Below, one piece after another: positions 8,663-14,092 of a stretch of DNA of 64,000 bases. The position numbers and the translations under genes are program-made. Below the pieces are notes generated by a model. It was not told the origin of the DNA. It saw only the letters and a list, made by a program, of their open reading frames with translations, and made no database searches. The first letter of the stretch is position 1, and each line of letters starts with the position of its first letter. The DNA lies in contig OU015567.1 of the NCBI GenBank assembly GCA_907165135.1, positions 3,224,001 to 3,288,000 on the forward strand, read 5' to 3'. The DNA is from Oikopleura dioica (taxonomy: Eukaryota > Animalia > Chordata).

Positions 8663-10983
8663 GGACGGAAAAAATCCAAATTTAAAAACTTTTTTGGAAC
8701 TTCAATTTTTATTGCTACCATCGAATTCTCCATATTTGAAAACCTAGAAAAAAATTATTTGTTTAGACAGGAGGTCTTCTAAATCTTTTCTAACTATCAT
8801 CTGAAAGAGCAAAAATGCCCTTCAGGAAAAGCTACTTTTAGGAGGGTTGCCGGATTTTTTCTTTTGATTTCTTTGTTGGATCATCAAGAGACAAGTCTAG
8901 GGCAGTCGGCAAACCAAAGAAAATAAGAAAGTTTTGATGTCTTCATGTTTAAAATAGGCATTTAAAAACGTGAAATTCGTCAAAAACAACGAGAAACGTG
9001 AAAAATCGCTTGACGGTCAATAATCGGCATACTAATGAGCTAAAAAAGTCGAACAAGTCAAAGGGAAGATATTTCGAAATAAATGCCTATCGAAATATAT
9101 TTATATATATTAATATATCTATTAATATATATTATCTATATATTATAATATATATTAATAATATATTATCTTCGGGCCTCCAGTCTGATTTTTCTCGAGC
9201 TGGTTCTAATAGAGTCACTTATCATGTACACAAAATTTCACGCGTTTTGAAGTGCAGCGCGACCATTTTTACTATAAATTATTAGATAAGCTTTTATCAG
9301 CTCTAGAATCTGATTTTTCGAGCCTCCAAGCTAATTCCTCTTGACTGAAGTTTGGTTACTGTTAGGTACCCGCATGCAAAATTTCATACAATTTGAGACG
9401 CAGCGCGACCTTTTTGACTTAATTGTATCGAAATTTTAGTAAAATAGCCATTTATAAGTAAGTTTTGGCCCTAGAATCCGAATTTCTAGGGCCTCCGATC
9501 TCATTTTTCGAAAGCAAAGTTAACTGAGTGCATTCTATCATATTGCAAAATTTCAATCGATTTGATGCGCAGCGCGACCATTTTTTAAATAAATTTATAG
9601 AAATATGCATTTATTATTTAATTTTTGCCCCAGAATCAAAACTTGGAGGGCCTCCAACCCAATTTCTCTCAAGCGAGCTAAAATGGGTGTTTTCTATCTG
9701 TCTACAAAATTTCAATCGATTTGATGCGCAGCGCGACCATTTTTTACAAAAATAATAATTATAACCACTATAAAGTAAGTTATCGAAGAAAATTAGTCGC
9801 GCTGCGTCTCAAATCGATTGAAATTTTGTAGACAGATAGAAAACACCCATTTTAGCTCGCTTGAGAGAAATTGGGTTGGAGGCCCTCCAAGTTTTGATTC
9901 TGGGGCAAAATTAAATAATAAATGCATATTTCTTTAAATTTATTTAAAAAATGGTCGCGCTGCGCATCAAATCGATTGAAATTTTGCAATATGATAGAAT
10001 GCACTCAGTTAACTTTGCTTTCGAAAAATGAGATCGGAGGCCCTAGAAATTCGGATTCTAGGGCCAAAACTTACTTATAAATGGCTATTTTACTAAAATT
10101 TCGATACAATTAAGTCAAAAAGGTCGCGCTGCGTCTCAAATTGTATGAAATTTTGCATGCGGGTACCTAACAGTAACCAAACTTCAGTCAAGAGGAATTA
10201 GCTTGGAGGCTCGAAAATCAGATTCTAGAGCTGATAAAAGCTTATCTAATAATTTATAGTAAAATGGTCGCGCTGCACTTCAAAACGCGTGAAATTTTGT
10301 GTACATGATAAGTGACTCTATTAGAACCAGCTCGAGAAAAATCAGACTGGAGGCCCGAAGATTTCGACCATCTTTAAAATAAATGGTTATTTTTAAGCAT
10401 TCAAAAATAATAATTTTCTTGAAAAATTAGTCGTGCTGCGTTTTGAAGAAGCCTAGATAATTTATTTGATTGAAAAGAAGCGAAGTAGTCGAATCTGTGT
10501 TTATTGAAAGAGGAGATCTGAAAGATTAATATATATAAATATATTTCGATAGGCATTTATTTCGAAATATCTTCCCTTTGACTTGTTCGACTTTTTTAGC
10601 TCATTAGTATGCCGATTATTGACCGTCAAGCGATTTTTCACGTTTCTCGTTGTTTTTGACGAATTTCACGTTTTTAAATGCCTATTTTAAACATGAAGAC
10701 ATCAAAACTTTCTTATTTTCTTTGGTTTGCCGACTGCCCTAGACTTGTCTCTTGATGATCCAACAAAGAAATCAAAAGAAAAAATCCGGCAACCCTCCTA
10801 AAAGTAGCTTTTCCTGAAGGGCATTTTTGCTCTTTCAGATGATAGTTAGAAAAGATTTAGAAGACCTCCTGTCTAAACAAATAATTTTTTTCTAGGTTTT
10901 CAAATATGGAGAATTCGATGGTAGCAATAAAAAATTGAAGTTCCAAAAAAAAAGTTTTTTTTAAATTTGGATTTTTTCCGTCC
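8663..10983. mobile_element. Nested foldback element, PIF/Harbinger-like ends, no transposase
   Basis: Ends GGACGGAAAAAATCC...GGATTTTTTCCGTCC flanked by TAA on both sides. Outer arms 8663-9113 / 10527-10983; inner arms ~9168-9745 / ~9795-10362, each made of four diverged ~150-170 bp units with core AAAATTTCA...GCAGCGCGACC. Confidence 0.85.
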
Positions 10984-11052
10984 TAAGGTAACAAATTCCT
11001 CTCGAGAATCATGATGTTTTATTCATCTTTAATTTACAGTCACATGAGAGTT

Positions 11053-11920
11053 TCAGTCAAGAAGAGTTTTGTAACAAAATTTTGCATATTTTTCTTCAAA
11101 GCCGCTCGATTTGATGATCATTCCGAAATCATTTCCTCCCGGTTGAAGAATTGCGTTCCAATCATGAGAAGTGAGGGAGCCGTCAGCGTAAACAGAAGTC
11201 CACGGCGAAACATCAGAGTCGTCGGGAATAGGCAAGACGATTCTCCATTCGTAAGCGCTAGTTTCCAACTCGAAGCTGATCTTTTCCCGGGTCGTTTCAA
11301 TTTTTTTAAAAAATGAAACTGAAAATTGTCATCTTTTAATACTTTATTCATGCAATTTAACGACCCTGTCCTTATATTGTCCGGCCATTATTTCTCCTTC
11401 GGACCAAACATTTGTAGGATTAAAGGAAACGAGGTCACATGACTCTTCCGAAAGATTGAGTGGCGTTTTGGTTGTCGTGGCAAATGTTAAGGGCTCTCCA
11501 ACAACTTAAAAAATATAAACCAGATGGCATCGAACTGAACTTACTTGTCTGTGTCGTCATTTTGAAGGTCGTGTAGTCAGATCGATCTGATTCTTCTGCC
11601 GCTTCCGTGCATAGCGAAAGATTTTCAATCGGATTTACCGCTGAGCAGCTTTCTTCTGATTGAACTTGAATCGTGAAATCCATCAAATCGTCGACATTGA
11701 AATACGCAGCTTGGAGCTCGTGGCTTGAAGCCTCTGCTGCGTCAGTTCTTGCTCGCCAAAGACCATGAATCGAAACTGGGGAAGACCAGTCGATGTTTAC
11801 TTTCCAAGAATTGACGGGGATGTCGGGAAGTTGGACGGAAAACTCGTAGAAGCAGTTTGAGTCGGTGGAGTTCCAAGTGTTTGTGATGAAAGTAGCATTT
11901 GCCACATCAAGAAGCTGAAA
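11053..11920 (-). CDS. Protein with two CBM2-like (cellulose-binding-type) domains; 5' end unresolved
   Basis: Domain 1: TFITNTWNS..FYEFSVQLPDIPVNSWKVNIDWSSPVSIHGLWRA..YFN. Domain 2 after splicing: CDLVSFNPTNVWSEG..AGQYKISFE..AYEWRIVLPIP..VSPWTS..SHDWNAILQPGGNDFGMII. Thr-rich linker between them. Confidence 0.6.
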
Positions 11921-12298
11921 ATTTTTGATTATTCAGAAACGATTTTAACGATTTTACTGGCCCAGCAGGTGGTAGCGGACTCCAGAGACAGTTTCAGGCA
12001 AACACAATCAATAAATCTTTGACCGTAAAATTTAAAAGGGTTTAAAAGCGCCAATGTTCCAGCGAATATCATAAGAAATCAAAATGACTGACAAAAAGAT
12101 ACAAAGCTTTTGTTAAGCTTTTCATAGAAATATCACAGAATTTCTCTCTTTCAAAAAATAATTGGTTTTCCAGCGGATGAACTCAAGAAAAATTAAAATG
12201 AATAACGTAAATCCTTATTTGTACTGCAACCATGTTCGTGTTCAATAAAATATGCTTAGTTTTATATTTTGGAAATCCTTTTCCATAGGAAAATTTTC

Positions 12299-13245
12299 TC
12301 AAGTTAGAACTGTAGTAATGATCTTTACCTCGCAGTTGCAATCTCCAGCACCTTCAGGATGACAGGCTCTTCGTTCAATGCAGAAGTTGTAATCATCTCC
12401 AAACAGGCCATCCTCACACTGGCAAGAGTGACTTCCTTCCTCATTCGTGCAAATTGAGTTCATCGGGCAGGCATCTCCCCTTTCGCATTCATCGACATCA
12501 ACGCACTCGGTATCGTCTTCATTTGCTTCGTAACCAGCTTCGCAAATCAAGCAGGGCTCTTCTCTCGTTTCGTACTCGACTTCGACTTCGCAAAATGGCC
12601 CTTCACAGGTTCGGGTTCGGTTGTAAGAGTCATCGTAGCACTCGCCCCAGTCAGACCAATCCGACCAGACTTGAAGGTCTTCTTGGACGGTGTGGAATTC
12701 AACGCCACTGAAATCGACGCATTTTCCCACTTTGTTCTTCTTGATGTAAACTTTAGCTTCATCGGCTAGTCTTCCCAACTTTTTGGTTTTCCCAACACCT
12801 TTGCAGTAAAACTCAATCGTGTTGTCATCCTGCTTCTTGATGTATTTCGCGGAGTATTTCGATCCGCAGCGGACAGGCTTTTTGAGGTCGGGATGGTCGA
12901 GGCTGACTTCGTAGTCTTTGTAGTCTTTGGCTTCTCCGTCGACAGGAATGGTGATGACAGTGTTGTGGACGAAGACTTCCGTGACGAATTTCGCGACGAG
13001 AGCAGTACCTAAAGGATGAGAAATTAAATGATGATTTTGACCCAAAAAAAATCTTGAGAAAAAAAAAAATTTTATGAAAAACTTCTGAAAGCAGAATTTT
13101 AAATAAAATATTCTCAGTTCTTTCCCTTACCTTGAGTAATTGGGCAATTTTTGCCACCCAAAATCTCTACTTCAAAAGGAACGTTGATTCCTGGAGCATC
13201 TTCGCCAGCAAACACGGTCGAAAAAACGAAAGCGGACAACTTCAT
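12299..13245 (-). CDS. Secreted TSP1 + calcium-binding EGF protein
   Basis: Signal-like MKLSAFVFSTVFA at 13245, one intron, then WSDWSDWGEC..RTRTC (TSP1) and CVDVDEC..CPMNSICTNEEGSHSCQCEDG (cbEGF). May splice onward into the CBM2-like exons. Confidence 0.75.
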
Positions 13246-14092
13246 AATTATCTTATGAAGAAAGTCGGAGTTATGAAACGAGCATCATGCGCGGTTGGTT
13301 TTATGTGAACGGGAGACGTGATCATGCGCCGCTTCGGGCAAAACACGTACAAAGTGCTCGACGTTTAACGTTACCGCATTTTCTGGGGAATTGAGTAACG
13401 ACTTTATTTTTCAGGAAAAAGAATCAACACGTCCACTGTAAAGGGAATTGACCCCAAGAAGGAGTTTCTTTTTCCTGAGGAAAATCGCCGAAGATTTTCA
13501 TTTTTGCGGACGATCAAGATTAAAAATATAGATTTGCGAACAGATGGTTTGTTTTTTGGAATGAACCTAGGCCAGATGCAGCGTTCTTTTGAAGCAGATT
13601 TTTATCAGATTCCTTTGGAAATAAATACGCAGAAGATCACATTTCGAGCTCAGTCGAGAAAAAACCTTTATTTTTGAAATGATTTTTGAATAGTGGAATG
13701 ATAAAATTTGCAAAAATATAGTTAATTGATAAAATGATTCAAGAACGCAAGAAGAGAGTGAAATCTTGTAAAAGCATTTATAAAATGAGACATTTACATA
13801 TGCTTTCCCGTGAAGGGGGGTTTTGAATAAAGTTAATTAAATAAACAATTATTCAATTTCTGCGTCATCTTATTATTCTGAATAAAGGCTGTTGAAATTA
13901 ATTTTCGAATTTATGTTGATTTATTACGAAACAGTCGAAACATTCGGTTAGACTCTAACCGTTAGAGAAAGTGTTTTCTCAAATTTGAAGCGAGAATTTA
14001 CTCGCGAGAAGATTCCGGCGTCACGATAATCAACAATCTGTCGTTTCTCATGCTGATGAGTTCTGATCAAGTTTACCCTTGTATTTTTGAAA

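Follow-up and report, generated by a model that had tools for sequence, protein, structure and literature searches.

The minus strand of Oikopleura dioica contig OU015567.1 (assembly GCA_907165135.1) carries, within positions 3,224,001 to 3,288,000, a five-exon gene whose product ends in two modules related to CBM2, a family of modules that bind cellulose, chitin or xylan. We refer to this stretch of 64,000 nt as the window, and all coordinates below are positions in it; the gene occupies 13245..11053. Tunicates are, to our knowledge, the only animals that make cellulose. The houses of larvaceans are composites of cellulose and protein, and are relevant to ocean carbon flux. The reading that we favour, with reasonable though far from full confidence, is that the gene encodes a secreted matrix protein tied to cellulose by its two CBM2 modules. 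An earlier note on this DNA had drawn attention to 11053-11920, a span that corresponds to exons 3-5, as tandem cellulose-binding repeats of bacterial type, and had suggested that matrix-domain exons further upstream might be spliced to them.

Frames and splice sites were read from the translation of 10700-13400, and exons were searched and scored one by one. The gene does have introns, as the earlier note had assumed: four of them separate the five exons (Table 1). The structure can be compared with a 1564-nt JGI contig from a relative (L002), which is colinear with window exons 1, 2, 3+4 and 5 at 68-84% nucleotide identity and in which the introns are absent, so that it corresponds to the spliced mRNA of that relative. 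Exon 1 is colinear with positions 66-138 of this contig, whose product reads straight over junction 1 (...ITQ-G-TAL...). At intron 2, positions 813/820 of the same mRNA correspond to window 12332/11911, the Cys-rich connector that ends exon 2 continuing directly into the first CBM2-like module (module A), and the acceptor is retained in a genomic ortholog contig (L001). Three candidates, all in frame, exist for the 3' end of exon 4, namely 11371, with a GA donor, and 11365 or 11362, with GT donors lying 6 and 9 nt downstream. The non-canonical GA donor at 11371 is tentatively favoured, because the mRNA contig has no residues between QYK and the sequence encoded by exon 5. The acceptor of the same intron is fixed, since the ortholog contig has a TAG directly before the homologous ATC and exon 5 therefore cannot begin earlier.

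Table 1. Features of the five-exon gene and its flank, in window coordinates
Feature	Position	Strand	Description
Exon 1	13131..13245	-	Start codon and signal-peptide-like N-terminus MKLSAFVFSTVFA...; donor CAAG/GTAAGG, phase 1
Intron 1	13009..13130	-	122 nt, GT..AG, phase 1; junction confirmed by the L002 mRNA
Exon 2	12329..13008	-	N-domain, TSP1-like motif, calcium-binding EGF and Cys-rich connector; colinear with L002 136-813
N-domain	13006-12668	-	About 115 residues at the start of exon 2, conserved, without Pfam match
TSP1-like motif WSDWSDWGEC... (WSxWSxW)	12667-12590	-	Motif only
Calcium-binding EGF	12499-12398	-	Pfam EGF_CA above cut-off
Cys-rich connector ACHP..CNCE	12367-12329	-	Contributes the N-terminal Cys of module A
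Intron 2	11915..12328	-	414 nt, GT..AG, phase 0; between the EGF exon and the first CBM2-like exon
Exon 3	11545..11914	-	Module A (11914-11603) and first half of the linker (11602-11545)
Intron 3	11505..11544	-	40 nt, GTAAGT..AG, phase 1; differs from L001, flanking exons conserved
Exon 4	11362..11504	-	Second half of the linker and start (first third) of module B; conserved relative to L001
Intron 4	11281..11361	-	81-90 nt, depending on the donor; acceptor aaaag/ATC
Exon 5	11053..11280	-	Remainder of module B (coding 11280-11056); stop 11055-11053
Poly(A)-signal-like hexamers ATTAAA (11033-11028) and AATAAA (11023-11018)	11018..11033	-	20-35 nt past the stop; motif match only

The predicted product is a modular protein of the matrix type, about 510 residues long and probably secreted. 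Its secretion, already proposed in the earlier note, is predicted from the signal-peptide-like segment at the N-terminus, and three relatives (P0008, P0009 and P0011) begin with hydrophobic segments that resemble it. The earlier note had placed TSP1 and EGF exons upstream of the repeats, and the two assignments fared differently. The EGF domain is confirmed by Pfam EGF_CA (PF07645), which scores 29.2-30.1 bits at 12499-12404 and passes its cut-off of 27. The TSP1 assignment is based on a WSxWSxW..C motif, Pfam TSP_1 (PF00090, cut-off 21.6 bits) giving no match at E<=1 in the window; in one relative (P0047) the same profile gives 14.2 bits with an E-value of 0.05, which is below threshold. We therefore speak of a TSP1-like motif. 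The N-domain that opens exon 2 is kept in P0005, P0008, P0011 and the mRNA contig, with motifs that include VSLDHPD and PVRCG, and it always precedes the TSP1-like motif.

Comparison with the ortholog indicates that the gene is real and selectively maintained. A word-index homolog search with exon 3 returned a single open reading frame (ORF), P0001, located on the ortholog contig, an 847-nt ENA metagenome sequence with about 90% nucleotide identity to the window, in which the exons are conserved and the introns have diverged and accumulated indels. The ratio of nonsynonymous to synonymous substitution rates (dN/dS), computed per exon by the Nei-Gojobori method, is 0.145 for exon 3, 0.040 for exon 4 and 0.043 for exon 5, or 0.088 when summed, at a dS of 0.6. 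Such low values in the three exons that code for the CBM modules indicate purifying selection. A pseudogene was rejected on account of the open frames and the dN/dS of 0.09, and bacterial contamination on account of the introns, the EGF domain and an ortholog with the same introns.

Whether the upstream exons belong to the same protein, which the earlier note had left conditional, can be answered positively on strong indirect evidence: the phases of introns 1, 2 and 3 are compatible (Table 1), the mRNA of the relative is colinear with all five exons, and more than 10 relatives hold the full layout, or its part from EGF through module A and linker to the second module (module B), in a single ORF. 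In the EGF region of the mRNA contig itself the frame is broken (L002:682-685), with a 4-nt overlap of the two genes called there, owing either to misassembly or to a genuine frameshift. Reads of three RNA runs (X4, X6 and X1) match the gene only at 12637-12670, a 34-nt segment containing the WSDWSDW motif, with a T>G difference at 12651 and unlike sequence on both sides. Being loose-ended on both sides, these reads would derive from an expressed paralog that shares the motif. No paralog of the exons was found within the window by tblastn.

The two modules can be followed in detail in exons 3-5. Module A lies wholly within exon 3, where three tryptophans noted earlier in the first repeat are found in NTW (11881-11873), NSW (11812-11804) and GLW (11764-11756), and where YFN (11704-11696) places an aromatic residue at the position of the third face Trp of CBM2. 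Module B is interrupted by a short intron. Its part in exon 4 comprises the Cys of SCD (11442-11434; Cys 11439-11437) and NVWSEG (11412-11395), and its part in exon 5 comprises YEWRI (11253-11239), SPWTS (11208-11194), DWNAILQPGG (11163-11134), FGMII (11127-11113) and KFCY (11082-11071), so that the CBM2 motifs attributed to the second repeat are all found where they had been located. The description of two repeats joined by a Thr-rich linker also stands, the linker having about 41 residues with 11 Thr and many acidic residues; the repeat length of about 90 residues does not, each module being about 100 residues long.

The positions of the ligand face were located in profile hidden Markov model (HMM) alignments and compared with the face of the Cellulomonas fimi Cex CBM2a (W17, W54 and W72); members of the family that bind cellulose or chitin have three such tryptophans. 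In module A these positions are occupied by W/W/F (11875-11873, 11758-11756 and 11701-11699) and in module B by W/W/W, within NVWSEG, SPWTS and DWNAIL; the core Trp is also retained. In the 16 rows of the family alignment, the first face (W14), second face (W53) and core (W37) tryptophans of module A, in exon 3 numbering, are invariant, and the third face position is Phe or Tyr. In module B, W21, W44 and both terminal cysteines are nearly invariant. Cysteines near both ends are a feature of each module, contributed in module A by CNCE, which closes exon 2, and by SLCTE, and in module B by SCD and KFCY, and they too are nearly invariant in the family; we infer that each pair forms a disulfide of the CBM2 type. 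Module A has an additional conserved Cys pair, C21/C90. The alignments thus show that both modules retain a putative aromatic binding face together with the terminal cysteines of the predicted disulfide. An N-glycosylation sequon, WNST (11875-11864, exon 3), directly follows the first face Trp of module A, and occurs as WN[S/N/D]T in 14 of the 16 family rows.

The assignment to CBM2 comes from the relatives of the gene. A phmmer search of the whole library, 1.84 billion representatives, with exon 3 produced 13 matches at E<=0.001, three of which are unrelated repeat proteins. The other ten are the ortholog ORF (P0001), P0002, P0003, P0005-P0009, P0011 and P0013, all of which, except P0001, share the layout of the window protein either entirely or from EGF onward. 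Five further full-length members (P0046-P0050) were retrieved by a word search with P0005, bringing the family to about 15 relatives, every one of them from a marine metagenome or metatranscriptome (JGI, ENA/TARA, Logan, MERC); a word-index search with the family alignment (A4) returned only three proteins. The Pfam profile CBM_2 (PF00553, gathering cut-off 24 bits) matches 15 of the 19 relatives scanned. Module A passes the cut-off in P0009, with 27.1 bits at residues 112-187, and exon 3 aligns with residues 111-207 of this protein at a library-wide E-value of 1.9e-6, that is, with the very segment that Pfam calls CBM_2. Module B passes it in P0008 (28.5 bits), P0021 (27.8), P0023 (27.4) and P0024 (29.3, in two stretches). 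In ten other members CBM_2 is the sole match on these regions, at sub-threshold scores of 15-22 bits.

Profiles built from the family point in the same direction. In the PDB, the profile of module A (A2, built from 16 rows) finds one match only, the CBM2 of Clostridium cellulovorans EngD (3ndy_E, E-value 0.074), and the module B profile (A3) matches only CBM2 chitin-binding domains (5dhd, 5dhe and 2cwr, E-values 0.025-0.058). When the two profiles are compared with each other by hhalign, the modules align with their Trp positions in register (E-value 7.7e-5, probability 62%). Searching the PDB by phmmer with single modules of the best-scoring relatives gave nothing useful, hence the link to CBM2 becomes visible only at the level of profiles or folds. 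Two sets of genomic scaffolds among the relatives show another gene organization. A TARA scaffold (L003:371-5240) contains two tandem intronless copies of a 314-residue short member, consisting of EGF and modules A and B, in a repeat unit of about 3.9 kb, each copy being followed by an opposite-strand gene with a faint C-type-lectin match. P0050 (452 residues) is an uninterrupted ORF at L004:5123-6481, present also on L005-L007, these being genomic scaffolds of 8-18 kb from a plankton eukaryote. As the homologous region is uninterrupted in all these TARA scaffolds, introns 2-4 of the window gene are not common to the whole family.

Fold comparisons were made with an AlphaFold2 model of a relative (P0002:44-289, with family alignment A5), which stands in for the window protein and is 66%, 76% and 71% identical to window exons 3, 4 and 5, respectively. 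The model has a mean predicted local distance difference test score (pLDDT) of 76.8, with two beta-sandwiches at 80-90 and a disordered linker below 50. Compared by VIA-align with 48,161 PDB representative chains, module A has three CBM2 domains as its top neighbours, 3ndy_E (Z 9.0, 88 residues, 2.4 A), 2xbd (Z 8.8) and 5dhe (Z 8.3), with two more CBM2 domains further down, 1exg (Z 7.5) and 2rtt (Z 6.8). The best two neighbours of module B are 8ose (Z 7.3), from a C. perfringens chitinase whose module family is not stated, and 6f7e (Z 7.2), the CBM2 of ScLPMO10C. The modules share 10-18% sequence identity with bacterial CBM2 domains of solved structure. In an ESM-Atlas shape search, all ten rows are CBM_2 (PF00553) clusters, superposing on module A over 98 residues at 2.0 A in one example, and on module B over about 90 residues at 2.8-3.2 A in others. 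Foldseek retrieves the single-domain CBM2 chains 3ndy_E and 6qfs_A with probability 1.00 but E-values of 5e-3 to 9e-3. Bicupins, the top Foldseek rows for the two-domain model, were rejected as an artefact of a query with two sandwiches, the root-mean-square deviation being 17-20 A. VIA-align and ESM-Atlas both use one AlphaFold model, and so amount to a single line of evidence.

Pfam, the PDB profiles and the fold searches all name CBM2 and nothing else, and we consider it very probable that both repeats are highly diverged CBM2 homologs. The resemblance is clearly beyond chance at the level of the family, and not on the window pieces alone. This upholds the CBM2-like identity that the earlier note had given to the repeats. 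The structural comparison that it had proposed as a check returns CBM2 structures as the best neighbours of the relative's model. The Pfam comparison that it had suggested succeeds in part: five relatives, covering both modules, pass the CBM_2 cut-off, and the window's own exons stay below it.

How might such a protein work? The proposed contact is through a flat face of aromatic residues in each module, W/W/F in A and W/W/W in B, which would rest on a crystalline beta-1,4 polysaccharide; the cellulose microfibrils of the animal itself are the likeliest candidate. The Thr/acid-rich linker would be flexible and probably O-glycosylated, and two modules on such a tether could provide avidity or bridge neighbouring fibrils. 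The opposite end, with its EGF, TSP1-like motif and N-domain, would contact other matrix proteins, and the molecule would serve as an adaptor, not an enzyme, that links protein matrix to cellulose scaffold in the house or in some other structure made of cellulose. Cellulose is put forward as the most likely ligand because of the organism, and that it is the cellulose of the house strikes us as only slightly better than an even guess. More tentatively, and with rather more doubt than belief on our part, the relatives may form a family of non-enzymatic cellulose adaptors of plankton tunicates, which would hold the animals' own cellulose microfibrils by tandem CBM2 modules, recruit matrix proteins by their N-terminal end, and help to set the spacing or cross-linking of the filter mesh.

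Several observations weigh against a cellulose-tied matrix protein. The window sequence, taken alone, gives little sign of CBM2: Pfam CBM_2 reaches only 13.3-13.4 bits on exon 5 (E-value 0.1, profile positions 28-89 of 101, about 60% of the profile), thus missing its cut-off, and has no match on exon 3 or exon 4; BLAST finds no significant similarity between exon 3 (the first repeat) and exon 5 (the C-terminal part of the second); single-sequence PDB searches with window exons return only noise; and the ESM-Atlas feature search has a CBM_2 cluster as its best match to exon 3, at a score of just 0.79, which we treat as a lead, and nothing for exon 5 (searched as 11056-11289, with 3 intron-encoded residues included). 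AlphaFold run on exon 3 without an alignment gives an unusable model with a pLDDT of 50; the good model is that of a relative with 66-76% identity and not that of the window protein; and Z values of 7-9 can also be attained by unrelated beta-sandwiches. The four RNA runs that carry the label of the same species yielded reads only on the paralog motif, and so provide no test of this copy. As regards the face itself, the third position of module B, Trp in the window, is Tyr in most relatives, and a glycan at the module A sequon could modulate or mask binding. Two further points touch on the nature of the ligand: the PDB matches of the module B profile are all chitin-binding CBM2 domains from archaea (5dhd, 5dhe and 2cwr), and chitin synthase is reported in a 2026 preprint to be expressed in cells that build the house, with chitin synthase genes noted in perioral and giant Eisen cells (10.64898/2026.03.31.715263).

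These last two points are also what recommends a first alternative, in which protein and fold are the same and what is bound in nature is not cellulose but chitin or some other beta-glycan, with a role in a chitinous structure or in the recognition of food or microbes. The fold neighbours include modules borne by chitinases (8ovr, 8ose and 2rtt), and the established ligands of the CBM2 family take in chitin and xylan as well as cellulose. Yet the best neighbours of module A include the cellulose binders 3ndy_E and 1exg, planar CBM2 faces of three aromatics usually bind crystalline cellulose and chitin alike, and cellulose is an abundant product of the animal (PMC3390340). We regard this alternative as unlikely, if one to be taken seriously.

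Less probable still is a second alternative, that the modules derive from CBM2 and no longer bind sugar, serving instead as beta-sandwich spacers or as protein-protein interaction modules. Their extreme divergence, which leaves the window pieces under the Pfam cut-off, would fit such a loss of function, as would the third face position, where Trp has given way to Phe in A and, in most relatives, to Tyr in B, and the conserved sequon adjoining the first face Trp of module A. What speaks for continued binding is the pattern of conservation: across relatives that are only 23-37% identical, the invariant positions are the face and core tryptophans and the terminal cysteines, the replacements in the face are aromatic for aromatic, and the dN/dS values of 0.04-0.15 are low.

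A third alternative concerns the source of the modules. The earlier note had envisaged a horizontal origin, and one can imagine a separate and fairly recent transfer from bacteria into the larvacean lineage, followed by fusion to animal EGF/TSP1 exons. In its favour, CBM2 occurs overwhelmingly in bacteria, every ESM-Atlas neighbour cluster for which taxa are recorded is bacterial, and horizontal transfer is accepted for CesA and GH6 of tunicates (PMC3390340, PMC7464555). Against this, the whole-library search revealed no close bacterial relative, every match bearing the module has an animal-type EGF context, and the 10-18% identity to solved bacterial CBM2 domains is low. There was no bacterial protein among the phmmer matches of exon 3, and a scan of 185,579 prokaryote genomes, made with a single peptide pattern and thus of limited sensitivity, found no relative. 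Moreover, CBM2 already sits at the N-terminus of animal GH9 endoglucanases, those of amphioxus included (PMC5977491). Given its presence on animal GH9 and the lack of a close bacterial relative, shuffling of an animal-resident CBM2 module is at least as likely as a separate transfer, and we judge a recent transfer of the kind just described to be improbable. The horizontal origin is therefore not supported, and the label 'bacterial-type' was overstated.

Finally, a chance resemblance, in which generic beta-sandwich domains unrelated to CBM2 would account for the E-value of 0.1 in Pfam and the lack of a significant PDB match with window sequences, and for middling Z values of the kind common among beta-sandwiches, is very hard to credit when four approaches, three of them independent, name only CBM2 (Pfam passes in five relatives, PDB profiles, top VIA-align ranks and 10/10 ESM-Atlas rows).

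If the adaptor model is true, this would be the first dedicated linker between cellulose and protein described in an animal, obtained by shuffling a module otherwise used in the digestion of cellulose. As to the way in which house proteins are anchored to the cellulose scaffold, the house proteome published so far offers no leads other than lectin and chitin-binding domains (PMC3390340). A conserved and predicted secreted protein that combines two CBM2 modules with animal matrix modules provides a concrete, clonable candidate, and its predicted face tryptophans are defined targets for mutation. It also offers an example of a 'microbial' carbohydrate-binding module reused in an animal matrix architecture.

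Three known systems can be set beside the window gene. The reference set is formed by the CBM2 domains (PF00553) of bacterial and archaeal glycanases: C. cellulovorans EngD (3NDY), C. fimi Cex (1EXG), XynD (2XBD), T. kodakarensis ChBD (5DHE) and ScLPMO10C (6F7E). With these, modules A and B share a beta-sandwich of about 100 residues, cysteines near both ends, a core Trp and a putative surface row of aromatics at the same alignment positions, and the arrangement of copies in tandem, with Thr/Pro-rich linkers; the same domains are their best fold neighbours and only profile matches. Besides their low sequence identity and the sub-threshold Pfam scores of the window pieces, they differ from the glycanase domains in the extra C21/C90 pair of module A, in its Phe at the position of the third Trp, in its sequon beside the first, and in being joined to animal EGF and TSP1-like modules, with no enzyme, in a gene with introns.

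The second system, the CBM2 of animal GH9 (PMC5977491), shows that the module is present in animal genomes, including those of chordates, and makes a plausible in-house source. There it occurs as a single module on a cellulase, whereas the product of the window gene is a matrix protein without an enzyme part that terminates in two of them. The CBM2 family and its presence in animals are thus known, and it is the two-module, non-enzymatic architecture with EGF and TSP1-like parts that appears undescribed; the literature within our coverage, which leaves most subscription journals aside, has no description of CBM2 in non-enzymatic larvacean proteins. The third system comprises the oikosins, of which 80 have been catalogued as house proteins of Oikopleura (PMC3390340, PMC3071929). 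The house proteome lists EGF, TSP1, lectin and ChtBD2 modules, and its candidates for contact with cellulose are the lectin and chitin-binding (ChtBD2) domains, with CBM2 unmentioned (PMC3390340); in this the window gene stands apart. In other respects the predicted product is like them, oikosins being modular secreted proteins built of EGF_CA, TSP1, lectin and similar modules, and some of them coat cellulose microfibrils (PMC3390340, PMC3071929).

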